Positions 3,651 through 59,869 of a DNA stretch of 64,000 nucleotides are shown here, one piece after another. The notes below the pieces were generated by a model that ran no database searches, was not told the origin of the DNA, and saw nothing but the letters and a program-made list of their open reading frames with translations. Made by a program: the position numbers and the translations under genes. The stretch's first letter is position 1. Every line of letters starts with the position of its first letter. The stretch is from Cyanophora paradoxa CCMP329 (lineage: Eukaryota; Plantae; Glaucophyta): the NCBI GenBank assembly GCA_004431415.1, contig QPMI01000560.1, positions 186,001 through 250,000 of the forward strand. Reading direction: 5' to 3'.

Positions 3651-5457
3651 TCAACTCACGGGAGGGAGGGGCGGCGGCGCATGCCGGGAAGGGGCAGGTC
3701 GGTGGGCAGGAGGGCGGCCCCCTGGGGGGCCGGCGGGGGCGTCGGGGGCTGCCGCCTGTGGCCCCGGCGGGGGCGGGGCGGGCCCGGGGGCGTGTGCGGC
3801 GCCCCGAGGGCCTCGCGGTAGGAGCGGGGCGGGGCCGGCGGGGCCGCCGCCGCCGCCGCCGCCATTGCCGCCGCGAGGAAGCTCTCCGCGGGGGCGTCCC
3901 CGGCACCGGCGAGAGCGCCGGCGCCCGCTGCGGCCCCCGCGCCCCGGGCGGCCCCTGCCCAGCGGGGAGCGGGGCGGCCTGGCGGCGGGGAGCGGGGAGG
4001 GGCGGCCCGGGGCGAGGCCTCTCCCAGGAAGTCCTTGAGGCTCATGCGGCGCGGCGCCGCCCGGGGTGTCCCATGCGGCGGCCCGCCCCGGGAGGGCGGG
4101 GTCTTCGCCTGGGCCGGGGTCGTGGGCGTTGCGGCCCGCTCGGAGGCGCTGCTGGCGGCGGGGAGCCCGGGGAGGGGGCCGGGGAGCCCCACGCGGGGAA
4201 CCGGGAGAGGGGCCGCCAGGGGGACGCTGGAGTGCCGGCGCGCGAGCCGCCGCGTGAGGGCCCGCCCCGCCGCGGCGTCTCGAAGTCCGCGTCCTGCTGC
4301 GCGCGCGTGGGCCGCCGCCGGGCCCGCGCGGGCGCCGGCGGGGCTGGGGCCGCACCTCGGGCTCGGAGGGCCGGTGGCGGGGGAGGGGCGGGGGAGGGGG
4401 CCTCCTCGGGCAGGCTGCCCTCGAGCTCGGCGGCGCTGGCGGCGGAGGGCGTGCCGGCGCGCAGGTCCAGCGAGGCATCCGAGGCCGCCCCGCTGCTCTC
4501 CGGCGAGCGCGAGCGCCCCGCCGCCTCCCGCCCCTCCCGCCCCCCGCCCGCCCCCGGCCCCTGGCCCGCGCGCGCGTTAGGGACGGGCCCCTGGCCGGGA
4601 AGGGGCACGCACGAGGGGCGAGGGGACGAGGAGGAGGGCGCCGCCGTGCGGGCCGCCCCCGGTCCAGTGCCATCCCACGTGCGCGTATATCGGCTGCGTC
4701 ATCGGCGCGCTCGCCGGCGGCCCCCGCGGTGCCCCGCCGTCCCAGCCCGGCAAGCACGCGATTGGCGGACGGCCGGCCGCAGGCGGCAGGCCGAAGGGGC
4801 TCAGCGAGCTCAGCGGGCCCAGCTGCAGCTGCAGCGGGCTCGTCGCGATCGGCGGCAGCTCGAGGCTGAAGGCGGGCGGCGTCGGGCAGCGCTGCCGTGA
4901 CCTCACATTCTCCTCTTGGAGCTTCGCCAGCGCCTGCAGAGCAGAAGGCAACATGTCACGGCGCGCGCTCGCGAGCTCGCGTGCCTGCGCATGCGCGCGG
5001 CGGACCTGCCGGGCCTTTTGGATGACGTCCGCGCGGTGCGTGCGCTCCGGCTCGACCCTCGTCTCTGAAAGAATGACTGCGGCGCGCTCCAAGCCGACAC
5101 GCGCCCGCGCTTCGTCGCGCGAGCTGATGAGCGCGGCGAGGAGCGATTCGTGCAAGAAGAGCCATTCTGCGGCCTGAGAGCCGCGCGAGATCAGCTCCCG
5201 AGCCTCCGATTCCATCGCAATGCGCTGCACGCGGCCGAGGATCGTCGAGAATCAGGGGCGTGCGCTGGCGGGAAGACCTTGGGGCTCACCTCGAGGGCCC
5301 GCGCGGCCTGCTCGACCTCGCAGACGCAGTGGAATACGTAACCGGAGAAACTGAAGCCGTCGCGAGGCGTGCAGCGGCCGTGGTGGAGCAGCTCGCAGGA
5401 AAGGTGGAGCAGCCTGCGGATCGCGCGCGCGCCCCGCCTTTCCATCTCAAAGCGCAT
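3651..5457 (-). CDS. Unknown Pro/Ser-rich protein (spliced; ends approximate)
   Basis: Protein-like exons (MRFEMERRGARAIRRLLHL..., EWLFLHESLLAALISSRDE, ALAKLQEENVRS) separated by intron-like segments, then a low-complexity tail. Confidence 0.4.
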
Positions 5458-5660
5458 GGAATGGATGTGTGTACGTGGGCGCAACACGCCAGCTCTCAAG
5501 CGCCGGGCGGCCAGTGAGGGGTAGAGTCTCAAAAGCTTCCTTGCTCGATCGGCCCCCCCCTGCCTGAGTCCGGCGACGCGCAAGCCCTCCGCGGACTCGC
5601 GGTCGCGTTACAGCGTGGTCAGGGACCCCCAGCGGCGTCCCGCGCACGAAAAGCGGCGCG

Positions 5661-8600
5661 ATGGGCGTTCGCGGACTTTCCACGTACTTGGAAAAGCAGG
5701 GCGATGCCATCGCAACGCAACTGGACCTTGCAGCGGTGCCGGACCCCCCGATCGCCCCCTCTGCCGAACTCCCCCCAGCCGCTCATACGCGTGTGTACAG
5801 GAGGCTGCCAAGGCACCTGGCGGCCTTGGCTTGATCATCGACCTCAACAACGTTGCCTACAACCTCGTCGCGGAGGCGGAGGTGAAGGCCGCGCGCGATG
5901 CGAAGGCGAGTCCCACCGCGGCGGTCATCCTGAACATCGCGGGCGGTGAGTCTATCGACGGCCGCCCCGGCCGCGCGCTGGTCTCTAGCTACGCGCGGTC
6001 GACGCGCGCGCGACGTCTGCGGCCTCCGCGCTGACGCGTCGGTCCGGTCCCATCGGAGTCAATCCCGTCTGACGCGTCGGTCCGGCAGGCGAGTACGATC
6101 TGATCGAGCAGCATGTCATCGAGTACTTCGGGCGGCTGTGCGCGGCGGGCATCAAGCCGCTGTGCTTCCTCGATCCGGCACAAGGGACGGACGAGGACGA
6201 GCGGCAGAAGTTCGACACGTGGGCGAGGCGGCACATGGACGACCGTATGCGCGCCCTCGAGGTGCAGAAGTGGTGCGCCACGGGCCGCGGCCTCGCCACG
6301 GCGGCCGGCGGGGGGCGGAACGGTGGCAACGGGGCGCGCCACTTCACGCTGCCGCCGCTCGCCATGCGGCAGGTCGTCCGCGCGCTGCAGCGCATGCAGG
6401 CGCGCCGCCCTCCCTCCCGCCCCCGCGGGATCGCATCCGCGCCGGCGTGACCGGGCGGGCGCAGATCCACGTGCGGATGTGCGTCGGGGAGGCGGACCTG
6501 CAGCTCGTGCACGAGATGCAGCGGCACAGCGCCTTCGCCGTCGTGCGCCCCGCGCCCGCCGCCGCCCTGGGCCCCGCGCTCACGGGCGCCGCCTCAGGTG
6601 AGCGACGACAGCGACTTCGCCGTGATCCGCGGGTCGCGCTGGATCCCCGCGCGGAGCCTGGCGGTGGGCGAGGCCGGCGTGCGGGCGGCGCTGGTGACGC
6701 CCGCCGCCGTCGCCAAGGCCCTCAACCTCTCCGAGGCCGCCCTCGCCGAGCTCGCCGCCGTCCGCCCCCGCCGCCCCCGCCCCGGCCCCCGCCGGCCCCG
6801 TAGACCTGACGGGCGGGGGGACACGCAGTTAGTGGGGAACGACATCACGGGGGCTGCTGTGGAGTCGCTGGGCGTGCTGCGGGCCGTCGGGGTCTTCGCA
6901 CCGTACGGGCGTCCCCAGGTCGAGGACGTCGCCCGCTGGATCCGCCAGATGCCCGCCCGCAGCGCCTCCACCTCCCCCGCCCTCCGCGGTCCGCCCCGCG
7001 CCCCGGCCCCGCGGCCCGCCCGCCCCGCGAGGCTCAGGCCGCGCAGACCTGCTGGCGGCGCACGGGGAGCTGCGGGAGGCCTGGCAGAAGTCGTCCCTCT
7101 TCTACGCCGGGCGCCTCCCCGCCGCCCCGCCCCTCCCGCCCCCGGAGCGGGACCGCTGGAGCGCCCTGGAGGAGGGCATGGCGGCGCTCATCCTGCCCGG
7201 GTACTCCCTCGCGGTCGCCCGCCACGGGCGCTACTGGTGCAGCCCGGCGGTGGAGTGCTGCGCGTGCGCCGACGGGGCCTCGCCGCTCTGCCACGAGCTG
7301 CTCGCGCCGCTGCGGCAGGTGGCCTACCGCCTCCTCGACCGCCGCGCCGTCGAGGAGCGCTCGGCCCCCGCCGGCGCGTGGGCCCTCGCCCCGCGCCTCG
7401 CCCCCGCGGCCGCCCCGGGGGCCCTCCCGCCCGCCGTGGAGGCCGCGCTCGCCGCCGTCCCCTCCGCCTGGCACGCCCTCCTGGAGTGCCACCGCGGCGG
7501 CCCCGCCCGCGCCCGCGCCCTCGCCGCCCTCTGCCACACCCACCTCCTCGCCCTCCCCGGCGCCCCCGCCGCCCTCCCCGAGCTCCCCGCCGGGCCCCTC
7601 GCCGCCCCGGCTCTTCTCCTCCGCTTCTTCCTCTCCCTCGTCCCCGCCCGCGGCATGGACCTCACGCCCCGCGAGTGGTCGGCCCTGCTCCTCACCGTCG
7701 CCGCCTGCGCGAGCCCCGCGGGGGGGCCCATACTCGAGCGCGCACGCCGGCAGCTCCTCGCCAACGCCGCCGCCGCCCTCTCCGCCGCCCCCGGGGCCCG
7801 CCGCCCGAGCTTCCGGAGCCTGCAGGTGGCGGCGCGCTGGCAGGCGTGCGCGGCGGCGTGCTCGGCCCTCGGGCAGCTGCTGTGCGAGCCGGCGTTCTTC
7901 GGCGAGCCGCGCTCTCTCTGGAGCGGCGCCGCCTTCCAGGCCTTCCTCGCCGACCCCCTCGCCCCGGGCATCCCCGACGACGTCCTCCGCGGCGCCGCCG
8001 CCCTGCGCGCCGCCGTCGCCGCCGGCTTCCCGCCGGGCGCGGGGGAGCACGGGTCGCCGCTGCGGGTGTTCCTGGTGGAGAGCGCGGCGGCGGTGTGGAT
8101 CCAGGACGAGTCGCCCTCGTCGGTGTACGCGGCGGCGCAGCACGGGGCCTGCTGGGAGGCCGTCGAGGCCCTCTGGGACGAGGAGGGCGACTCGTCCGCC
8201 CCTTCTTGCTTGCTCTCTCGCTTGTTCCTCACTTCCTCGCTCGCGCAGGGACGAGGACGTGGAGGCGATGCTGGAGGAGGCGGCGCGGGCGGGGCGCCCC
8301 GAGGGGGGGGGGGACGCTCTCCTCGAGCCGCCCCCCGAGCTCGCCCCCCCGGGGCCCCCGCCCGCCGCGGGGGACCGCCTCCCCATCGACGGCCACCGCG
8401 AGGAGATCGTCGAGTACATCCGCACGCACCGCGTCACCTGCATCCAGGGCGAGGCGCGCCCTCCCGTCCCATCCCTTCGGCCTTCGTCCTCTGAGCTGAT
8501 GCGATCCGGTCCCTCCAGACGGGCTCGGGCAAGTCCTCGCGGGTGCCCCTGTTCCTGCTGCAGGACGCGCGGGCGCTCGGGGAGCCCGTCAACATGGTCA

Positions 8601-11600
8601 TGACCCAGCCCCGCCGCATCGCCGTTCGCTGCCCCGCCCCCGCCCCCGCCCCGCCCCCCGCCTTCTCCCCGGCTCACGCGCCCCCTCCGCCCGCAGGCGA
8701 TGTCACTGGCGAAGCGCGTGGCGGACACGCTGGGCGAGGAGGTCGGCGGTGCGCGCCGCCGCCGCCTCTGCCGCCGCCGGCCGCCCCTCGGAGAAGCTTG
8801 CCTGCCGAGGAAGCGAGGACGACGCTTAACCTTCTTCTAGTATTTAGTCTTTCAGCCGAAACTTCAGCATAATTTGTTATGTGGTCACCTCCCAGCTCTC
8901 GCTGACCGCCGCGCCCGCGCGCAGGGACGGTGGGCTTCTGCGTGTCCCGCAACCGGAAGACCTCCTCCCGCACCCGCCTCACCTACGTCACCGGTCCCCG
9001 CCCCCGCCCCCACGCCCCTCCTCGCCGCCGTCTCACCGCCTTCCTGGCAGTGGGGTACCTGCTACAGCTGCTCTCGCACAAGCCCGAGGAGGCCTCGCGC
9101 TACACGCACGTCCTGCTGGTGCCCCCCGCCCCCCCCCCCTCCCCCCCCTCCCCTTCCCTCCGCCCTCCCCTCCGCCCCGCCCCTCCTCCCGCCGCCCCCG
9201 ACCCCCCGCGCAGGACGAGATCCACGAGCGGAACGTGGACGCGGACCTCCTCTCGCTCCTCCTCAAGGTCCTCCTCCGCGGCCACCCCTCCGTCAAGCTC
9301 GTCATCATGGCCCGCCCCGCTCCCCTTTGCTCTCATCTTTCTTCTTCGCCCCTCTTATCTTTCCTTGCAGTCGGCGACGCTGCAGGCGGACCTCTTCTCG
9401 CGGTACTTCGCGGAGCTCTCGCCGGACGGGGCGGCGCCGCCGCCCATCTTCGTCGGCGCCGCGCGCTTCCCCCTCGAGTTCCTCTACCTCGACACCCTCG
9501 CCGCCCGCTTCCCCAACCTCGCCGAGCCGGCCCGCCGCGCCGCCTCCCACTTCCCCCGCTCCGGCGCCCGCGCCCTCCCCTCCGACGGCGACGCCCGCCG
9601 CGCCGGCTTCTCGGGGCGGGCGGCGCGGGAGGCGGGGCGCCTGCCGAAAGCTGAGATCAAGCGGGAGACGTACGGGCTGGCGACGGCGCTGCTCGGGCGC
9701 ATCCTCCTCCCCGGCCAGACCGTCCTCGCCTTCCTGCCGGGCGTCGCGGAGATCGCCTCGCTGCAGACGAGCGTGCAGGAGGGCCTGCCGGGGGCGTCGG
9801 ACCCGGCGCGCCTCCACCTCGTCATCCTCCACTCGATGGTCTCCAAGGAGGAGCAGGAGGCCGCCTTCGCGCCCCTCGCCCCCGGCGTCGCCCGCCTCAT
9901 CCTCGCCACCAACATCGCCGAGTCCTCCATCACCCTCCCCGCCGTCCACTACGTGCTGGACTTCGGCCTGCACCGCCACCTCGTCCTCGACAAGGCCCGC
10001 GGCATCCAGTGCCTCACCCTCACCTGGTGCTCCCGCGCCTCGTGCAAGCAGCGGGCCGGGCGCGCGGGGCGGCTCTTCCCCGGCACCGTCGTGCGCTTCA
10101 TGCCGAAGGAGTTCCACGACACGGCCCTGGCGGACTTCGACGAGGCGGAGATGCTGCGGGTCTCCCTCGAGCACGCCGTCCTCCGCGTCAAGCTCCTCTT
10201 CGCCCGCTTCGGGACCGTCGCCGAGCTCCTGCGCCAGTCCGTCGAGTCCCCTTCGGCGGAGGAGGTCGCGTACGCGCTGGACGAGCTGCACCGGGCGGGG
10301 GCCCTCACGGGCGCCGGCGAGGCGAGCGAGGTGACGCTGTTCGGGCACCTCGCCGCCGTCATGCCGGTGGACCTGCACGTCTCCAAGCTCGTCCTCTACG
10401 GCCTGCTGCTCCACCGCGAGTGCGACGCGCTCTGCATGGCGGCGGCGATGAGCGTCCAGGACCCCTTCTCCCTCCCCATGATGCAGTACACCCCGGACAT
10501 CCGCGCCGTCCGCCCCTTCCGCTTCGCCCGCCCCGCCCGCTTCGCCCTTCGTGCAGCTCACCGGCCGCCGCGCCGCGCAGTACTGCGCCGACCTCGAGAA
10601 GAACTTTCGCGCCCGCATGCACTACGACGCCGGTGCGCCCGCGCGCGCGCCGCGGCCACCTCGCCCGCCCGCCCCGCCCCACCGCCGACGCCCTGAGCGT
10701 CGGGCAGGCGAGTACAGCGAGCTAATCGCGTACCGCAACCTCTGGATCGGTGGGCGGCCCGCCTTTGCCTCCGCCCCGCCCTACTTCGCCCCCCCAGCGC
10801 TGACGCGGGGGGCGGGGGCAGCGTGGACGCGGTCGCAGCGGTCGCGGGAGTGGGCCCACCGCGCCTCGGTCTCCTTCGAGCGGATGAAGGCCTTCGACGC
10901 GACGGTCGCCGACCTCGCGACGCACTTCATCGGCTTCCTCTCCCGCAACGGCGTCGACGTCGAGCGCCTCCCCGGCCTCCAGGCCATGTCCCAGCGCTGG
11001 CGCGACGACCCCGGTCCGCTTTATCCCAGCCCCGCTCAGCCCCCGCCTCGCCTCCGCTTAGGCTTCTCCCCTCAGACGGCGGCGGCTGGACGCGGGACGC
11101 CTTCGTGCCGGACACGCGCCCGCTGAAGGCGCTCCTCGCCCTCGCCTCCCGCCCGGGCCTCTTCCTCCGCGCCACCCTCCCCGAGGGCAAGAAGGTCGAC
11201 CGCCCGCTGCGCTCCATGCGCGAGCTCGGGCTCGACCCGGCGCGCACGCTCGTGGTGGGCGTCTCGGTGAACCGCCCCGGCGAGCTCGGCTCGGGCCGCC
11301 TCGCCCGCCTCCTCGGCGACCTCGTCGGCGTCGACGCCGAGCGCGTCGAGGCCGCCGGGCGCGACTCCCCCGGCTCCTACTTCCTCCAGCTCCGCGCCCC
11401 GGACCGCCCCCCCGGGGCCACCCAGCGCCAGGCCGGCCTCCTCGGCGCCCCGCCGCGGCTGCTGCAGCGGGGGCGGGACTCGCCGGTCGGGGGCGGCCGG
11501 CCGGCCTCGCCGGGGGCGCCGGCGCCCCCGCAGGGGGAGCTGCTGCGGGACCTGCCGCCCGACGGGAAGCTGCTGCGGCAGCTCACCGCGGGGCTCGCCT

Positions 11601-53049: not shown

Positions 53050-54058
53050 CCGAAGCATCCGGAGATCGCTGGCGCTTGAATGAAGTATCGGAATGGCTCA
53101 GCAGGCTCGGCGGCTCGGCGGTGGGCGGGGTCCAAGGAAACGGGGGGAGGGGGGCGGAGGGGAGAGGAGGGAGGGAGCTCGAGGGAGAGGGGGGGGGGGA
53201 GGAGGGGGGAGGGGGGAGCGGGGGGGGGGGCCGAGGGCTCGAGCGCTGCTCGCTGCCGCATACGCAGCGCAAATGCAGGACCGTATCGCACGTGGGATCG
53301 ACCCCAGGGCATGATCATGATCATGATCATGAACGAGCTCGACTCTCCGGGGCTCGGCGAGCTCGAGCTCGAGCGGGCTTCCGCGATCGCTGATCATGAT
53401 GAGTGATGGCAGACGTACAAGTGCACGTGATCATGACTCGGTAAGGCCCGCAACATGTACGGTGTGTTTCCAAACTGATGCTCTCAGAGTCTTGATGCAT
53501 ATGGATCCAGACGTCGACTTCCAAGTTTGGATCCCCCGGAAGAAGTGATCTTCGAAGAATTTCGGAGTCCGACGGCCCCGAAGTTCTGTGAAATATTGTC
53601 ATTTCCGAGTTCCCCTGAGGCCCGGCGGCCCCCCGGGCCCGGGCCCCGGGCTCTGACGTCGACTGACTTAATGATCCGATGATCATCCGATGATCATTTG
53701 CCGCGGTGTGGTGCCGCAGTGCCACGGTGCGACACGCATCATGGGCGGTGTCACGGCGACGCCAATTGCAAGTTCAAGGATCATCGGATTGCCAAGTTGT
53801 CACCTGCCAACTTCGCAAGTTTAAGGCTAGCTGACTCAGTGATCACACTGCTGATCAGGACCTGAGGGCCTTTAATTTTGCCAATAATTGAACCCCTGGG
53901 CCTACAGCCAGCTGCCATCTGCATCTGCAGACGTGAATGTCGGCAGATCTAGAGCACTGCCCCGACGCCGATATCGCAGCCTCCTCTCCGACATCGCAGA
54001 GGCGCTCGATTTCAGAGTAAAGCTTCCGACAAAAAGGTACAATCGCAGAGGCGGGGGC

Positions 54059-57000
54059 TCAAGAGTCGGGGCCGGGGTCGGCGGGGCGGAGGCGGACGAC
54101 GGAGTAGGGCTTGCCGGGCTCGTCGAGGGCGAAGAGGGGCGAGGCGGCGAGGAAGGCCTGCGGGGGACGCGGCGGTCGGCGGGCCTTAAGCTTGCGCGGG
54201 AGGCAAGGCAAAGCGAAGCAGAGGGGCACCTGGAGGGCGAGGCGGCCCGGGTGGAGCTCGGCGAAGGGGCGCCCGGCCTCGGCGAGCACGCGGTTGCCCA
54301 GCGTCGCCACCGGCAGCGAGCCCCCCGCCGAGACGACCTGCAGGGACCCCGCCTCAGCTGCCGCCCTGGCGGGGGCGGGGGCGGGGGCGGGGGCGGGCGC
54401 ACGATGCCCTCGAGGAGAGCCGCCAGCTCCGCCTCGCTGCTGCTGCCGCCCCCGCCCGCCCCCGCCGGCACAGCCGGCCCCGCGCCCTGCGCCCCGCCGG
54501 CCGCCGACCCCGCCACCTCCAGCCGCGGCCGCCACTGCGCCTGCGCGCCGAAGGCCCCGCGCCCGTACCCGCGCCCCGGCCGCCGCCGGCGCCGCCGCGG
54601 GGCTGCCAGCCGCCGTGGCCGCCGCGGGGTGGGGCTGCTGGGCGTGCGCCCCCGCCTCGCGGCCGGCGGCGGCGCTCCGCTCGTCGGCCTCCGCCTCGTC
54701 GGCCCACGAGCGGCGCCCCGCCGGCGAGGAGGGCGGGGGCGCCGCGTCCAGCGCCCCCGACCTCCGCTCCGCCGCCGCCCGCTCGTAGGGCGAGCCCAGC
54801 ACCGGCTGGCCCGCCCCGAGGCCCCGGCCCCGGCCCCGCCCCGCCTCGTACCCGCCCCGCCCGCCCCCTCGTAGCCCCCGCGCGGCACGTAGCCCCGCGG
54901 GGGGCGTAGCCGCCGCGGGGGCGTAGCCACCGCGGGGGGCGTAGCCGCCGCGGCCGGCGGGCGGATGGTCGGGCTGGCGGGGCGGGGGGGCCGGGCGGCG
55001 GGGCCCCTCGACGGGCTCGTCGGCGGCCTCGGCCCCGGGCTCGGGGGGGGCGAGGCCCTCCTCCCGCCGCAGCCGCGCCATGTCCGCCGGGGAGCACTCC
55101 GTGTGGTTGAAGCGGCAGGCGGCCCCCAGCATGCACCGCTGGTACACGAAGTGCTTCTTGCACGGGAAGTTCTTCAGGTCTGCAGGCCGCCCGCCCCTCT
55201 CCGGGTCAGGCCTCCGCGCGGGCGGGCGGGGGGGGGAGCGCACCGTGGGCGTAGTAGCAGCTGGTGCCGAAGCGGCAGGAGCCAAACTTGACCATGTACT
55301 GGCACGGGCGCCGCGGGAAGCGCCCCGCCGCCCCCGCACGCGCCCCGGGCCCAGCCCCGCCCGCCCCCTCCTCGTCATCCACCTCCTCCTCCTCCTCCCC
55401 GTAGTCCTCGTCGTACCCCTCTTCCTCACCCGCTCCCGCCTCCTCCTCCTCCCCCTCGAAGCCGGCGTCGGGCTCCGGCGCCGGGCGGCCGGCGGCGCGG
55501 TGGGTGGCCTTCTCGGGGCTCGGGGCGCGGGGCGGGGGCGGGGCGGGGCGGGGACGGGCCCCGCGGGGGCGAGGCCGGGCGGGGGCGGGAGGTGGACGAA
55601 GCCGAGGGGGGCCCCGTGCACGGGGAGGGTGGTGACGGGCGCCGGCAGCGCAGCGCGCGCCGCCGGGTGCAGGGCGAAGGGGCACGGCACTGCGCGGCGG
55701 AGCACGAGGGTCAGGCAGGAAAGAGAGGGCGGGCGGGGCGGGGGGGGCGGGGCGGGGGGGCCCTCCCGGGGCCGCACGGACCAGGAGCCATGTCGTCCTG
55801 GATGAGGAAGTCGTTGGCGGCGCGCAGGCACGCCAGCAGCACCGCATACGCCGACTTGTCCAGCCCGAACTGAGGCCGGGCGGGTTGGGCGGGTGGGGCG
55901 GGGCGGGGCGGGGCGGGGCGGGGCGGGGGACCCCCGGCGGACCTGCTTGTCCTTCTGGTCGGAGTAGTTGGCGAGGAGGTAGACCGAGGACTCGTTGATC
56001 GCCAGCGCCTGCGCCGGCGTGCACGGACAGGGACCGGCGGGTGAGGCTGGGGGCGGGGGAGGGGGTCGGGCGGGGGGAGGGGGCGGACCTTGCAGACGGC
56101 GCGCACGCGGGAGCGGCGGGCCTCCTCCTCCTGCAGCAGGTCCCCGTGCGAGATCGCCACCACCGCCCGCCGCCCTGCCCCGCCCCGCCCCTCAGCCCCG
56201 AAGCCGAGCGGAAGGAGCCGGGGCGGGGGCGCGCGGTGGGTGAGGGTGACGGCGCGGTACTGGGCGGCGAGCTCCCGCATGACCTCCTCCCGGTAGGCGT
56301 CCGCCTCGGAGACGACGAAGAGGACGGCGTGGATCTTGAGCGCGGGGTCCGCCCCGGAGGCCTGCCCCGCCCGCTGCTGCTCGGCCGCCACGGACTGGAA
56401 GGTGACGCGCGGCTGCATGGCGTAGAAGGGCGGCATGGCGCCGTGCAGGAGCAGCGCGATCTCCTCCCCCTGGTAGGTCTTCGCGTCGAAGCCCCAGACG
56501 TCGCCCACCGTGAGGCGCAGCTGCTGCAGCTCCCGGTCCGGCAGCCTGCCCCCGCCCTCAGGCGCCGGCGCGGGGGCGGGGCTGGGCGGGGCGGACGCGT
56601 CGAGGGTGTAGCGGAAGAAGGCCTGGGTGACGTGCGCCGTGTCCCCGCCCACGACCGCCGGCGCCTTGAGCTCCGAGCTCACGCTCGTCAGCGCCGAGTT
56701 GAAGAACGCGCTCTGCGGGCGGCACTTGAGGCGGCGCTCCGGGGCAAGGGCCGGGGCCGGGGGTACACGGGCCTTGCCGGAGCCGGCGGGCCCGAGGAGG
56801 AGGATGTTGGCGCGGGGGGCGGCCCCCGAGGCCGGCCGCCACGCGAACGCGTCCCCCGTGAAGTCCTCTGCCCGCGTACCCCGTCGGCCCCGGGCGGGGC
56901 GGGCGGGGCGGGGCGGGGCGGCCCGAGGGGGCGCACGGAAGTCGAGCTGGAAGGCGTCGGCCTCGCAGGGGAGCACCCGGTCCGTCGCCCCGCACCGCAG

Positions 57001-58467
57001 CGAGTACTGCCCCGCCCAAGCCCCCTCAGCGCGGGCCGGGGGCCGGGGCGGGGCGGGGCGGGGGCGGGGCGGGACCTCGATGTACTCGGGGAGGGCGTCG
57101 AGGGCGGCGTGCAGGCCCCCCGACCCGCTCCCCTGCGCGCGCGCGCAGGCCTCAGCGATGGGGCGAGGCGAGGCGGGGGGGCGGGGCGGGCGGGGACCTT
57201 GGCGTAGAGGGTGGTGCGGAAGACGCGGGCCTGCCCGGGCTCCACCGCCCCGTCCAGCAGGATGCTCTGCGAGGCCGGGGCGTCGGGAGGCGCGGGAGGG
57301 ACGGGAGGGGCCGCCGTCACCTGCGTGCTGAAGTAGCCGTTCTCGCGGAAGACGAGCCGCGAGCCGCGCACGATCGCCTCCGCCCCCACGTTGTCGATCT
57401 GAGCGCCCGAGGAGGGTGAGCGCGGAGGGAGCGCGCGGAGGGGGGCGAGAGAGAGAGAGGCGCGCCCGGACTTGGACGGGCATGTCCTCGCCGATGCGCA
57501 TGCGGGGCCGGTCGGCGGCGTAGAGGCGCCCCGCCGTCACCCGCGCCAGCGCCTCGGCGTGCGTCTCGCCGAAGCAGGCGCCCAGGGCGGCGTGCAGCTC
57601 GGAGAGGGGGTACACGCGCTCCTCGCCCGAGGCGGCGCGGCGGAGGAGGGCGGCGTCGGCGTCCTCGCGCCCCGCCGCCTCGTCCAGCACCAGCACCGTC
57701 ACCGTCGCCCGCTTCTGCGAACGAAGGCTCAGCGCCTCGGACTGCGGCATAGAGCGGGCCGGGAAGGCGGGCGGGCCTCGCGCTTGATGCGCTCGGAGGT
57801 GTTGGGGAGGTGGATGGCCTCCGAGGCGGGGAGGCGCCCCCCAGTGAACACCCACACGTGCTTCGCGTGGTGCTGGTAGTCGCTGATCGAGAACTGGTAC
57901 CCCGCCAGCGAGAGCGCCGCCGAGAGCACGGGGCCGTCCCCGTCCCCGCTGCAGAGCGCTGCGCGGCGCCCCCGCGTGAGCGAGCGGCCGGGGCACGCGT
58001 CGCCGGCGGCGCGCACCCATGGAGCAGTTCTCGATCTCATGGCGGTCCGACGTGAGCCCGCGCAGCAGCTGCGGCTCTTCGCACACCGTGATGATGGCCA
58101 CCTGCGAGCGCGCCGGCGGAAGTCAAGGGAAATCGATCGGGGCTTGCGGGGGGCGCAGATCGCGCGCTGTACGGACCTGAGACTCCGGCGTGAGCTGTGC
58201 CGACAGCTGCGTGATGGCCAGGCGGACGCTGGTGAGGTCCTCGTCTTCAAGCGACGTGTCGCAGATGCAGACGCTGCGTCGCGAACGTGCAGCGTCAGTT
58301 CGGTCCGGTCGATCGAAATGAAACGAAAAGAGACGTAGAATCGCGTGTGATCGAAAACGGCCGGGCGCTCACACGTCGTAAGCCCTCGGCCGCGGCGGGC
58401 GCGGACGAAGCTGGCGCACGAGCTCCGCGCTAAGCGTCTGCCGGGCCTGCTGCTGCCAACCGCTCAT
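54059..58467 (-). CDS. vWA + IFI44-like P-loop GTPase + two CCCH zinc fingers + RGG + OST-HTH/LOTUS-like protein
   Basis: vWA: YDVVCICDTS, VAIIT, KHVWVFTGG. IFI44-type: NILLLGPAGSGK/SAFFNS, DVWG, IHAVLFVV, LANY, LRAANDFL. Zinc fingers: CQYMVKFGSCRFGTSCYYAH and CKKHFVYQRCMLGAACRFNH. YAPRGG repeats. Terminal GGSLPVATLG...L/AFLAASPLF. Confidence 0.75.
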
Positions 58468-58591
58468 CTCTCCTTCCGCAGCTTTGAGAAGAGCTATACG
58501 CCCTGACCGACCTATACTGCGGTCCTACTAGTGGTCTCGAAATTGCGTATCCTGGCCGCCGCGGCTCGCCGGGCTTGGCTTGGCTGGCTGG

Positions 58592-59869
58592 TCAAACGGC
58601 CAGCCGGTTACTCCCGCCTCAGTAGCGGGTCTGGGCAGCGACGACGGCCCTGCGAACCCATACATATCAGCTGAGCTAGCAGCCCAGGATGCCACCGTAT
58701 CGCAGCTTATTGAGGCGATCCGCGCACGGGCGGCGGCGAAGGGAGAGACGCCGTCGCTCGAACGCGACATCGCAGCCAACGTAGTTCGGCGGACAGGGAA
58801 CTGCACCCTGCAGTTCTCGCGGCCGTCTCTGTACGAGTTCGCCCGCCTGGCGGCCGAAGAGCTGGACGTCCGCCTCGTCTGGGGCGAGTCGGCAGCATAT
58901 TCTGGAAGCTTCGGCGCGCGCCCCCGGAAGGACACCCATCCATGGGTGGAGCTCGTCGGCGTTTCAGTATCAATCCAGCGAGACGACATTCAGCGCTGGG
59001 TCTCGCGTGCCCTGCAAGGGACGCGCGCGGCCGTGCGGTCGTGCCATGCGCGGTCCTCTCGGGAAGTCCCGGAGGTCCCGAACGGGACGTACACGGTTTA
59101 CCTCTCAGTGCTGCCCTCGCCGGACGAGCTGGCGCGGTGCTTCCCACCGTCGGTGGAGATGCGCGAACTCGACGCGTCCCTGCCGGCGGCGGACGGGGCG
59201 CTGCACTTCGGAGTCTGGTACAAGGGGCAGGAGAGGAGGCCTCTGCGGTGCTTCGGGTGCTCTCGCTTCGGGCACGCTGCAAAGCAGTGCCCGGCGGCGC
59301 GGCGCCCGCCTCGTCGGGAGATTGGAGGTGCGCGGCATGCTGTCTCCCCTGCGGGGGAGGCAGCGGCCGCCTCGTCAAGTGCCCCGGCGCCGCCCCAGGC
59401 GGCTCCGACGGCGGAGAACGCTGCAGCGGGGCTTGGGGGTGCCTTGGGGTCGCAGGTGGCTCGAGGGCCGCCGGCCGCCCCCTCGGGACCTCCTCCGGCA
59501 CCGGCGAAGGGGAAGGCGCGAGGCGGGACCTCTTCGGGCGCACGGCGCCCGGCGAAGGCGCCGCCGGCCGCGCCTTCGCCATCGTCGCCGCCGAAGACCC
59601 GCTCGGCGTCCAGATCAACACGGGCGCGGGAAGCTGGAACGGGGTCGTCCCCGGCGGCCGAGCTCAAGCGGCGGAAGGCGGCGAGGGCTGGGCCCGAGGA
59701 CGAGGACATGGAGGAACTATCTCCCCTGGAGAGGGACGCGGCCGAGGCCGCGGAACGCTTCATGCAGGAGTTATTCGGCGGAGGAACACCTTCCCCGCCT
59801 TCGGCCCCCTCTGTTTCGGAACCCTTTCGTCTTTCCGGGTTGAGGACAGGTTTTCTGAAGTCTAGATGA
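58592..59869 (+). CDS. Gag-like ORF1 with CCHC zinc knuckle (5'-truncated or non-ATG start)
   Basis: Intronless open frame of more than 420 codons. CX2CX4HX4C at 59249-59290. First in-frame ATG only at 59159. Confidence 0.75.
   Translation, partial: SNGQPVTPASVAGLGSDDGPANPYISAELAAQDATVSQLIEAIRARAAAKGETPSLERDIAANVVRRTGNCTLQFSRPSLYEFARLAAEELDVRLVWGESAAYSGSFGARPRKDTHPWVELVGVSVSIQRDDIQRWVSRALQGTRAAVRSCHARSSREVPEVPNGTYTVYLSVLPSPDELARCFPPSVEMRELDASLPAADGALHFGVWYKGQERRPLRCFGCSRFGHAAKQCPAARRPPRREIGGARHAVSPAGEAAAASSSAPAPPQAAPTAENAAAGLGGALGSQVARGPPAAPSGPPPAPAKGKARGGTSSGARRPAKAPPAAPSPSSPPKTRSASRSTRAREAGTGSSPAAELKRRKAARAGPEDEDMEELSPLERDAAEAAERFMQELFGGGTPSPPSAPSVSEPFRLSGLRTGFLKSR

Follow-up and report, generated by a model that had tools for sequence, protein, structure and literature searches.

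Does the glaucophyte Cyanophora paradoxa carry, in one protein, a relative of the interferon-linked animal GTPase IFI44 joined to RNA-binding modules? A sequence-only reading of a 64,000-nucleotide stretch of its genome (here called the window) had proposed such a gene as a candidate innate-immunity effector, combining vWA, GTPase and RNA-binding parts. All features listed in that reading could be found in the sequence, on the minus strand (Table 1). The locus raises three questions: whether it is one intact gene, whether its GTPase belongs with IFI44, and what such a protein might do. Our overall reading, which we hold with moderate confidence, is that of a single expressed gene from a vWA-beta-GTPase family, with a G domain of IFI44-type fold and a putative RNA-binding end, which would act as an NTPase switch.

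Gene structure and expression

The locus is a single expressed gene encoding a protein of roughly 1,030 to 1,060 amino acids. It runs on the minus strand from an ATG at 58467-58465 to a TGA at 54061-54059 and is interrupted by at least 19 introns, all of them short. Exons 1 to 16 (58522 to about 55572) were confirmed by spliced RNA contigs of 1.86 to 1.91 kb from runs X1, X3 and X7, which represent two studies. Twelve exon joints were read directly, and three further introns were deduced from contig-length arithmetic; introns 57075-57007 and 56936-56868 were placed in this way (138 nt missing). Contig depth was modest and alike in the three runs (about 9 to 15), and the gene was unspliced in the DNA run X9, unlike in the RNA runs. 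All exons are in phase and free of stops, and the start codon is the first ATG, in frame with exon 2 via a GTGAG donor.

Fourteen of the 15 exons from E2 to E16 (the exception being E7) matched the family profile A3 in strictly collinear order, at positions 36 to 586. Since these matches are collinear with abutting exon boundaries and reversed-exon controls scored nothing, a chance match is excluded.

The GC content of the gene is 77 to 88%, its introns measure 51 to 99 nt and one quarter of its donors are GC. With this high GC, its short introns, its GC donors and probable single-base assembly errors, the gene exemplifies how annotation can fail in the C. paradoxa genome.

Table 1. Features of the vWA-GTPase gene in the window
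Feature	Position	Strand	Basis or detail
5' UTR (from at least 58522) and exon 1	58373..58522	-	X1, X3 and X7 contigs reach 58517-58522
vWA-like domain	57567..58380	-	end of exon 1, exons 2-4, first part of exon 5
vWA introns	58372-58274, 58176-58102, 58016-57959, 57776-57715 (GC-AG)	-	all four are RNA contig joints
All-beta middle domain	56937..57516	-	end of exon 5 and exons 6-9
Beta-domain introns	57465-57399 (GC-AG), 57320-57267, 57197-57133, 57075-57007, 56936-56868	-	RNA joints (for the last two, see text)
P-loop GTPase domain, predicted IFI44-type	55782..56867	-	exons 10-15; RNA joints and contig arithmetic
GTPase introns	56772-56713 (GC-AG), 56596-56546, 56234-56175 (GC-AG), 56088-56009, 55942-55870	-	
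Exon 16 start, after intron 55781-55690	55598..55689	-	joint 55689/55782 in three runs
Frame break, frame 0 to frame 2, in CCCCGCCCC tract	55512..55601	-	GC3 shift at about 55.54 kb
Acidic (Glu/Asp-rich) tract, exon 17	55368..55457	-	frame 2 read directly; GC3 favours frame 2
Tandem CCCH fingers	55103..55304	-	finger 1 55304-55245, finger 2 55162-55103, intron 55243-55180
RGG/RGGY repeats	54820..54955	-	direct reading
LOTUS/OST-HTH-like winged-helix tail	54062..54462	-	exons 54462-54403, 54337-54230, 54157-54062
Tail introns	54402-54338 (predicted), 54229-54158 (seen in RNA)	-	X7 joint 54156/54229
Stop codon 54061-54059 and 3' UTR	53993..54061	-	RNA contigs extend to 53993-54014

A family of vWA-beta-GTPases

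The gene belongs, as a diverged sixth member, to a family of C. paradoxa and uncultured microbial eukaryotes in which vWA, all-beta and GTPase domains form the conserved core. Five paralogues were found in C. paradoxa, which makes at least six members with the present gene: P0004 (tig00001000_g6184), P0001 (tig00000042_g15614) and a tandem trio of P0005, P0003 and P0002 (tig00020629_g12366, g12367 and g12369, respectively). Compared exon by exon, with contiguous exon boundaries, their G domains are 49 to 52% identical to that of the window gene. The C-terminal modules vary among the paralogues, with the CCCH pair, LOTUS and U-box present in different sets: P0004 combines VWA, GTPase, CCCH and U-box, and the GTPase is followed by OST-HTH in P0005, by a U-box in P0003 and by WH_Egal in P0002. 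The downstream exons in the window are matched by the paralogues' CCCH and LOTUS-like segments. The present gene thus resembles its paralogues in the collinear core and in the CCCH finger(s) and LOTUS-like modules behind it. It differs from them in lacking a U-box, in having RGG(Y) repeats and an acidic tract, and in its more degenerate vWA domain (as judged by sub-threshold or collinear-profile evidence), and it is a close duplicate of none of the five.

The environmental relatives (P0007, P0012/P0024 and P0023/P0040, from JGI and Logan contigs) are likewise collinear over the full vWA-beta-GTPase length, with 36 to 38% identity in the G domain, and their contigs resemble eukaryotic mRNAs. 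Unlike the window gene, they keep a canonical MIDAS (DxSxS/T, TDG or TDA) and have neither CCCH nor LOTUS modules; one of them starts with a signal-peptide-like stretch and also has a membrane segment and a tail rich in RS. The PADLOC anti-phage models did not match the window or P0004, the environmental relatives gave a marginal match to mad8 (E 6e-4), and a scan of 185,579 prokaryotic genomes returned a single match, which was a false positive.

The vWA and all-beta domains

Pfam PF00092 did not match the window's own exons, and the vWA assignment was made via collinearity with the corresponding paralogue region. Exons E2 to E5 match family-profile positions 36 to 226 in order, and the equivalent region of P0004 and the environmental relatives is Pfam VWA, with E values of 1e-14 to 1e-20. 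In the paralogue model, this region aligned to the vWA domain of CMG2 (Z 23.5, rmsd 2.3, 168 residues aligned). A degenerate MIDAS had been suggested from the motifs DTSLE (exon 1/2 junction) and FTGG (exon 4); in the profile, these fall on the DxSxS and TDG positions, and the MIDAS is therefore degenerate. A complete DxSxS...T...D set was not found in the window, which has D-T-S-L-E, T-G-G for T-D-G and a GG loop without the Thr. Judged by these motifs, the metal site has been lost in this copy.

What had been described as a beta-rich linker turned out to be a conserved domain. Exons E6, E8 and E9 match profile positions 227 to 316, a conserved part of the family profile, and the region is predicted to be all-beta in the paralogue model, with 7 to 8 strands at residues 207 to 320. 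The same region of the relative P0015 gave a weak Pfam CARDB match.

The G domain and its relation to IFI44

The full series of GTPase motifs proposed earlier was recovered: G1 GPAGSGK/S, a P-loop split by the GC-AG intron 56772-56713, G2 HVT, G3 DVWG, a G4-like ISHGD, ANYS and a C-terminal AANDFL helix. The NY...K...DFL helix region is conserved across the whole family. In exon 16, a conserved P-V-P-C-P-F, which aligns to residues 614 to 620 of P0004 and to the environmental relatives, ends the GTPase module and is followed by a proline-rich linker.

By sequence, this domain has few relatives. An exhaustive phmmer search with the G region against 1.84 billion representatives (E <= 0.001) returned only 23 matches, none of which was shown to be an animal IFI44; the top five were the C. 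paradoxa paralogues (E 8e-27 to 2e-17), and all 15 of the other matches whose source was looked up came from metagenome or Logan contigs. Word-index searches for sequence similarity to IFI44 were blank as well. A profile search of PDB sequences ranked septin-6 (5.8e-6), Irgb10 and IIGP1 (both about 1e-5) and Toc33 (4e-4), placing septins and IRGs nearest among solved proteins at E values of about 1e-5. Pfam Septin (PF00735) had no match on the window; in the relatives, P0010 reached 26.4 bits, just over the gathering score of 26.2, and the others 16 to 20.5 bits. AIG1/GIMAP (PF04548) stayed below its cut-off of 27, with 17 to 21 bits in three relatives. The Septin, AIG1 and IIGP matches of the relatives are all sub-threshold except that of P0010 to Septin. 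The Pfam TLD domain was absent from the window ORFs and from the paralogues.

The predicted fold gave a different answer. The query was the AlphaFold model of P0004 residues 300 to 640 (pLDDT 80.7), that is, of a paralogue 49% identical to the window's G exons and not of this gene's own protein. In a shape search of the ESM Atlas, seven of the ten rows (rows 1 and 4 to 9) were IFI44 or IFI44-like clusters, with TM by query of 0.65 to 0.67, 247 to 265 residues aligned and rmsd of 2.6 to 3.4. The other rows were chordate or mollusc; rows 3 and 10 were unnamed mollusc clusters (TM 0.67 to 0.69, 268 to 269 residues), and row 3 carries a TLD domain. Septin, GIMAP or dynamin clusters did not occur in the ten rows. 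The best solved chains aligned over only 158 to 205 residues (Toc33, Z 15.1; septin, Z 13.3; GIMAP4, Z 12.3). Language-model features of the paralogue domain scored 0.97 to 0.92 to the same chordate and mollusc clusters; a first feature search of the Atlas with one exon only had put septin clusters on top (0.84) and IFI44-like ones at 0.76.

On the evidence of these models, the GTPase is a member of the septin-like group of P-loop GTPases and, in predicted fold, comes nearest to the animal IFI44/IFI44L G domain. Because sequence searches found no IFI44, the link is one of fold, drawn on a paralogue's model. Given this result and the missing TLDc, the protein is not orthologous to IFI44 but places an IFI44-type G domain in an architecture that is new and non-animal. 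The proposal of an IFI44-like GTPase therefore stands for the fold and falls for sequence and for TLDc. The competing assignment to septin/AIG1 families divides along the same line, since the fold points to IFI44 clusters and the sequence profile to septins and IRGs.

The putative RNA-binding C-terminal end

CCCH, RGG and LOTUS are known RNA- or RNP-binding modules. The modules follow one another as vWA, beta domain, GTPase, acidic tract, two CCCH fingers, RGG and LOTUS-like tail, and the four downstream elements were all read where they had been reported. Both fingers have the exact C-x8-C-x5-C-x3-H spacing and score 17.3 and 11.8 bits with Pfam zf-CCCH (PF00642; cut-off 20.5), which the homologous finger of P0004 passes with 21.7 bits; a conserved S-P-x-D-M-A-R-L-R motif follows the pair. 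In tblastn, P0004 residues 662 to 683 and 684 to 729 mapped onto the two CCCH exons with the same junction, and P0003 and P0005 matched finger 2. RNA contigs begin exactly at 55179, the edge of the CCCH intron. Against a profile built from the LOTUS-like modules of the paralogues, the central tail exon scored 17.7 bits (E 8e-7, six sequences searched), and the flanking exons gave collinear but weak matches. Pfam OST-HTH (PF12872) did not match the window's tail exons, and among the paralogues' LOTUS-like modules only that of P0005 passes it (34 bits).

No RNA contig bridges 55.6 to 55.36 kb, where contigs stop or are skipped as repeat, and for this reason the link between GTPase and CCCH rests on the reading frame and on the paralogues. 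In P0004, the same exon junction divides the CCCH pair, which makes it very probable that the RNA-binding part lies in the same gene as the GTPase. The claimed multi-domain gene is thus supported by paralogues in which the same GTPase is followed by these modules, from which we infer the connection.

Proposed mechanism

Because its G1 to G4 motifs are intact, the protein is predicted to bind and hydrolyse GTP. Septins, Toc, GIMAP/AIG1 and IRG GTPases function by dimerising or polymerising according to their nucleotide state. By analogy with septins, Toc and GIMAPs, the G domain would self-associate in a nucleotide-dependent manner and so move the protein from one state to another. Binding of a protein partner would fall to the vWA and beta domains and would need no metal ion, and the C-terminal CCCH, RGG and LOTUS modules would anchor the assembly on RNA or on an RNA helicase. 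That paralogues replace or extend the C-terminal end with a U-box ubiquitin ligase suggests a constant NTPase switch with exchangeable output heads, which may act on RNA-protein targets. Such a layout is typical of surveillance or defence and equally possible for RNA-granule regulation; a role in innate immunity is, for the C. paradoxa gene, a guess by analogy.

Alternative readings

The window sequence does contain the frame break announced near 55.55 kb, which RNA contigs do not span. A division into two genes there, with a vWA-GTPase ending near 55.6 kb and a separate CCCH-RGG-LOTUS gene downstream on the same strand, would explain why the long spliced contig goes no further than about 55572-55632 and why the CCCH, RGG and LOTUS exons are covered by separate short contigs only. 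It would also suit the lack of a CAG acceptor at 55512..55601, where all 17 other acceptors are CAG. However, the contig break coincides with a repeat tract that the read analysis skips, frame 0 meets no stop between the GTPase and 54059, neither a start codon context nor a 5' exon that could belong to a second gene was seen, and P0003, P0004 and P0005 have a CCCH finger 50 to 200 amino acids behind the same GTPase, in P0004 with the identical exon junction. We therefore consider two genes unlikely, and the break may mark a short intron whose acceptor is atypical or an assembly error of one nucleotide. Further frame changes, at about 54.93, 54.85 and 54.62 kb, could together with this one be the genuine marks of a decaying pseudogene. 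In the RGGY repeats, however, RNA contig 54868-55179 has two 1-nt insertions (54892 and 54916) at the frame breaks that restore the regular repeat. GC3 is 0.93 to 1.00 throughout the inferred coding frame, all 15 exons of the N-terminal part are intact and keep conserved motifs, and the gene is spliced and expressed; decay is thus very improbable.

An intact single gene may still contain a generic septin-like, IRG-like or AIG1-like GTPase that resembles IFI44 by shared class membership, as the phmmer result, the PDB ranking, the sub-threshold Pfam matches and the one-exon feature search would have it. Yet the Atlas rows, IFI44 in their majority, exceed every solved septin or Toc chain by 50 to 60 aligned residues and have a lower rmsd, the feature search with the whole domain favours the same animal clusters, and the family-wide NY...K...DFL helix is covered by the IFI44 alignments, which leaves this explanation rather improbable. 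A more serious contender, though less likely than not, is a housekeeping factor of RNA granules or mRNA regulation whose GTPase core organises RNP assemblies. LOTUS, CCCH and RGG proteins organise such assemblies in germ granules and stress granules. Every identifiable output module is a general RNA/RNP module, expression was similarly modest in three runs not known as infection experiments, and prokaryotic defence families had no match to the window gene. On the other side, at least six diverged paralogues with a tandem trio and shuffled C-terminal heads are more typical of conflict genes than of core RNA machinery, and the nearest known G domain, by predicted fold, comes from an antiviral interferon-stimulated gene.

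Implications

Few vertebrate antiviral genes are induced as strongly as IFI44 and IFI44L; to our knowledge, how their GTPase domain works is not known. Here, a G domain of the same predicted fold occurs in a glaucophyte, far outside animals and without interferon. That it is hard-wired to RNA-binding and ubiquitin-ligase modules suggests that the ancestral task of the IFI44-type G domain concerned RNA or RNP targets. We offer as a tentative and rather doubtful extension that IFI44-type GTPases are an ancient eukaryotic module of RNA-directed surveillance and not an animal invention, the C. paradoxa genes being a diversified, cell-autonomous immune repertoire. If so, at least six C. paradoxa genes would wire one vWA-GTPase switch to exchangeable heads for RNA binding (CCCH, RGG or LOTUS) or ubiquitin ligation (U-box), giving a first mechanistic handle on the role of the enigmatic IFI44 G domain. 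The family offers tractable natural domain fusions in which the RNA/RNP idea can be tested.

Comparison with known systems

With IFI44/IFI44L, the C. paradoxa gene shares the modelled G-domain fold, membership in a multi-copy family and what we take to be a common motif order (P-loop followed by SxFxNS, G3 DxxG, an H/T-x-D G4-like motif and the NY...DFL helix). The two differ in that pairwise sequence similarity between the G domains is not detectable, in that IFI44 has a TLDc where the C. paradoxa gene has vWA and beta domains upstream of its GTPase, in that the CCCH, RGG and LOTUS modules downstream are absent from IFI44, and in that IFI44 is linked to interferon, a system absent from C. paradoxa. 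Septins, Toc33/34, GIMAP/AIG1 and IRG proteins, which are septin-like and related TRAFAC GTPases, provide the nearest solved structures and sequences (IIGP1, E 1e-5), but every Pfam family stays below cut-off on this gene and their structural overlap is shorter than that of the IFI44 models; the gene also lacks a septin-unique element, a coiled coil and a membrane anchor. Its fingers have the C-x8-C-x5-C-x3-H pattern of ZAP, Regnase and TTP and lie just 6 residues apart, compared with the 18-residue spacing of TTP-type tandem fingers, and its putative LOTUS-like tail resembles the OST-HTH winged helix of Oskar, TDRD5/7 and MARF1. Unlike all of these proteins, which are not known to have a GTPase or a vWA domain, the C. 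paradoxa gene very probably combines such modules with both.

Gene structure and transcript support

GC content over the gene region is 66-88%, and the minus strand gives a clearly protein-like translation whose frame changes from stretch to stretch. Reading the sequence together with the RNA evidence yielded one gene, with exactly the end coordinates given in the sequence-only reading, which was confirmed as an observation. Our search of sequencing runs gave seven runs guessed to be RNA, holding 39-47% of the words, plus three from 2012, and the contigs of four runs (X1, X3, X7 and X9) were compared with positions 53900-58700 of the window. X1, X3 and X7, from two studies, each contained one contig of 1.86-1.91 kb that extended from 58517-58522 to ∼55572-55632 and skipped 15 short segments. 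The X9 contig was unbroken over the same 15 segments, and we thus regard X9 as DNA. Twelve introns were directly visible as joints in RNA contigs, and four more were deduced from the length of the contig itself together with the side lengths reported. With these boundaries, all exons are in phase and without stops.

Features of the vWA-GTPase gene, in window coordinates (introns from donor to acceptor)
Feature	Position	Strand	Basis
Gene	ATG 58467-58465 to TGA 54061-54059	-	sequence reading and RNA evidence
Intron	58372-58274	-	RNA joint
Intron	58176-58102	-	RNA joint
Intron	58016-57959	-	RNA joint
Intron	57776-57715	-	RNA joint
Intron	57465-57399	-	RNA joint
Intron	57320-57267	-	RNA joint
Intron	57197-57133	-	RNA joint
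Intron	57075-57007	-	deduced
Intron	56936-56868	-	deduced
Intron	56772-56713	-	RNA joint
Intron	56596-56546	-	RNA joint
Intron	56234-56175	-	deduced
Intron	56088-56009	-	RNA joint
Intron	55942-55870	-	deduced
Intron	55781-55690	-	RNA joint
Frame 0 to frame 2 change	near 55.55 kb	-	in CCCCGCCCC tract, skipped as repeat in read comparison
CCCH finger 1	55310-55245	-	tblastn, P0004 662-683
CCCH finger 2	55180-55061	-	tblastn, P0004 684-729
Intron	54229-54158	-	RNA joint

The introns are short (51-99 nt) and rich in CCCCGCCCC, and every acceptor examined (17/17) is CAG. Four of the 15 transcript-supported introns between exons 1 and 16 have a GC rather than a GT donor (at 57776, 57465, 56772 and 56234), one of which falls inside the P-loop, between GSGK and S. 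GC donors are unusually frequent here, which may hold genome-wide in this very GC-rich alga; judged by title, no paper listed in literature searches dealt with GC-AG introns in Cyanophora.

On the other side of the start codon, RNA contigs of 2.6 kb begin at 58558/58567, 36 nt off the 5' end of the gene, and head rightwards, covering a plus-strand ORF with a CCHC zinc knuckle (58580-59869). This element or gene has transcripts, and the promoter region of the vWA-GTPase gene may be shared with it or disturbed by it.

A diverged member of a multi-copy family

Relatives were sought with single exons, read-through ORFs or paralogue proteins as queries. Run exhaustively against 1.84 billion representatives, phmmer returned 23 matches in all to the read-through G region (window 56089-56865, minus strand), the top five being C. 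paradoxa proteins from EukProt (E 8e-27 to 2e-17). By Pfam content, these paralogues combine the GTPase with different partners: VWA, zf-CCCH and U-box in P0004, U-box in P0003, OST-HTH/LOTUS in P0005 and WH_Egal in P0002, with P0001 being a truncated model. The weaker matches were environmental ORFs, some with VWA + GTPase (P0007, P0012/P0024, P0023/P0040) and others with GTPase + double zinc ribbon or CARDB + GTPase. PADLOC and NCBIfam searches gave no meaningful family match, the PADLOC families including none that matched the vWA-GTPase gene.

Translations of the individual exons, made from the exon coordinates, were then searched against a profile of the full-length relatives. Fourteen of the 15 exons E2-E16 matched, their order strictly kept and their ends abutting (profile positions 36-62, 63-87, 100-137, 162-226, 227-251, 281-295, 302-316, 319-349, 350-387, 391-485, 488-515, 517-537, 538-566 and 569-586); E7 gave no match to this profile, and the reversed exons used as a control gave none at all. 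Exon by exon, the G domain is 49-52% identical to the five paralogues and 36-38% identical to the environmental proteins. These collinear matches and identities place the studied gene in the family as a sixth member, well diverged from the rest.

The environmental contigs resemble mRNAs of eukaryotes: they are mRNA-sized and share the same end point across samples, and one carries AATAAA close to its end. One environmental neighbour is a coiled-coil ATG16-like protein. A pattern scan of 185,579 prokaryotic genomes yielded a single locus (Nitrospiraceae MAG, 4654-9630), which proved to be an HlyD/AcrB efflux operon and thus a false positive, and a bacterial, "YegL-like" origin was dropped. Since the contigs are mRNA-like and the prokaryotic scan gave only this false positive, we take the family to be eukaryotic.

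Two variants within the family deserve mention. P0023/P0040 (L004-L007, Logan SRR17973836-42) begin with a signal-peptide-like stretch, have a hydrophobic segment following the GTPase and end in an acidic, RS-rich tail, which suggests a membrane-anchored form of the vWA-beta-GTPase core from a eukaryotic source. P0002 (tig00020629_g12369; 2,316 aa) has three or more LOTUS-like modules in a row after its GTPase (residues 730-815, 1345-1420 and 1885-1970) and, judged from gene numbers on one contig, forms an apparent tandem trio with P0003 and P0005.

The RNA-binding end very probably belongs to the same gene

Whether the CCCH part is a separate gene was weighed against its fusion to the GTPase, as the sequence-only reading had it. 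Beyond intron 55781-55690, the frame carries a conserved P-V-P-C-P-F motif shared with P0004 and with the environmental proteins, and no stop codon interrupts that frame before 54059. According to the tblastn placement, the finger pair is split by the same exon junction in P0004 and in the studied gene. Finger 2 and a downstream S-P-x-x-x-A-R-L-R motif are also matched by P0003 and P0005, and the tail exon at 54328-54206 is matched by P0003 and P0002. RNA contigs start exactly at 55179, one of them with another 116 letters compatible with the finger exon upstream. The central exon of the tail matched a profile built from LOTUS-like modules of the paralogues (E 8e-7, six sequences searched); the P0005 module passes Pfam OST-HTH, and the window's own LOTUS-like tail exons gave no Pfam match. 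A single gene running from the GTPase through the RNA-binding end is therefore very probable, and the open frame and the junction shared with P0004 support the proposed fusion.

The frame change near 55.55 kb could reflect an intron or a sequence error. We did not commit to an intron model because splice-site matrices built from the gene's 17 introns found no candidate there with the otherwise universal CAG acceptor. One missing base would equally produce the shift, and the coding linker would then be proline-rich, as in P0004. Compared with the window, RNA contigs contain 1-nt insertions at 54916, 54892 and 54625, all inside C/G runs, and those at 54916 and 54892 restore a regular RGGY repeat. 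GC3 periodicity likewise places frame shifts at ∼54.93, 54.85 and 54.62 kb. The window thus probably contains several homopolymer errors in a stretch of 77-88% GC (54625, 54892 and 54916), probably with further single-base errors at ∼54850, 54600 and 55540. Homopolymer indel errors, probably present in the most GC-rich tracts of the assembly, would break gene models here.

vWA, beta and GTPase domains

In the N-terminal model of P0004 (pLDDT 77.9), residues 23-190 adopt a predicted vWA fold (Z 23.5 to the vWA domain of CMG2), followed by an all-beta domain at residues 207-320. The claim of a degenerate MIDAS held up, with D-T-S-L-E and T-G-G in the window versus DxSxS/T and TDG in the environmental relatives.

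Motifs G1 (GPAGSGKS once spliced), G2 (HVT), G3 (DVWG) and a G4-like ISHGD are intact, and the gene also has the C-terminal NY...K...DFL helix seen throughout the family. As to which GTPase class this domain represents, sequence and structure gave different answers. IFI44 was found neither by the exhaustive phmmer search over 1.84 billion representatives nor by word-index protein searches; blanks in the latter say little, the first having been swamped by proline/alanine-rich intron read-through and the profile version having scored only 8,000 word-sharing candidates. A word-index search with the P0001 domain returned only P0001 itself and P0004, and when PDB sequences were searched with the read-through G region of the window, the matches were no more than P-loop noise. 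By profile, the nearest solved proteins were septin-6 (5.8e-6), Irgb10 and IIGP1 (about 1e-5) and Toc33.

A model of the P0004 G domain (residues 300-640; pLDDT 80.7, pTM 0.79) was compared by shape with ESM Atlas cluster representatives. Seven of the ten rows listed were "Interferon-induced protein 44" or "44-like" (TM by query 0.65-0.67, 247-265 residues aligned, rmsd 2.6-3.4); the other three (TM 0.66-0.69, 252-269 aligned) were clusters from chordates or molluscs, of which one carries a TLD domain, and septin, GIMAP and dynamin clusters were absent from these ten. The best solved chains covered only 158-205 residues of the model (Z 15.1 for Toc33, 14.7 for EngB, 14.5 for MFN2, 13.3 for septin and 12.3 for GIMAP4), and Foldseek against PDB gave an uninformative EF-Tu match (TM 0.33). 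Compared by language-model features, the paralogue domain as a whole scored 0.97-0.92 to the same chordate and mollusc clusters, whereas a single exon alone ranked septins first. In the predicted structure, the likeness to IFI44 is clear, and from this modelled fold we conclude that the family's G domain is IFI44-type, inside the septin-like group.

Possible role and relation to IFI44

The intact G motifs and septin-like fold suggest that the G domain could act as a switch by associating with itself in a nucleotide-dependent way. The vWA and beta domains would engage a protein partner with no need for a metal ion, and the CCCH, RGG and LOTUS modules would attach to RNA or to an RNA helicase; in paralogues, the head is swapped for a U-box, or a U-box is added. 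A switch that stays constant while its heads vary, in a family that is multi-copy and partly tandem, would by analogy suit surveillance or defence, and the same layout would also suit RNA-granule regulation.

Judged by title, no paper listed in the literature searches dealt with IFI44-like proteins in algae or protists or with a vWA-IFI44 fusion. We conclude that the family is no IFI44 orthologue, since it lacks TLDc and any sequence similarity lies below detection. The proposal of an IFI44-like GTPase is thus upheld in part: it is not supported by sequence, with septin-6 and the IRGs the nearest solved proteins and no IFI44 match, but is supported by fold. What the P0004 model supports is an IFI44-type GTPase in a non-animal lineage, set in a new architecture.
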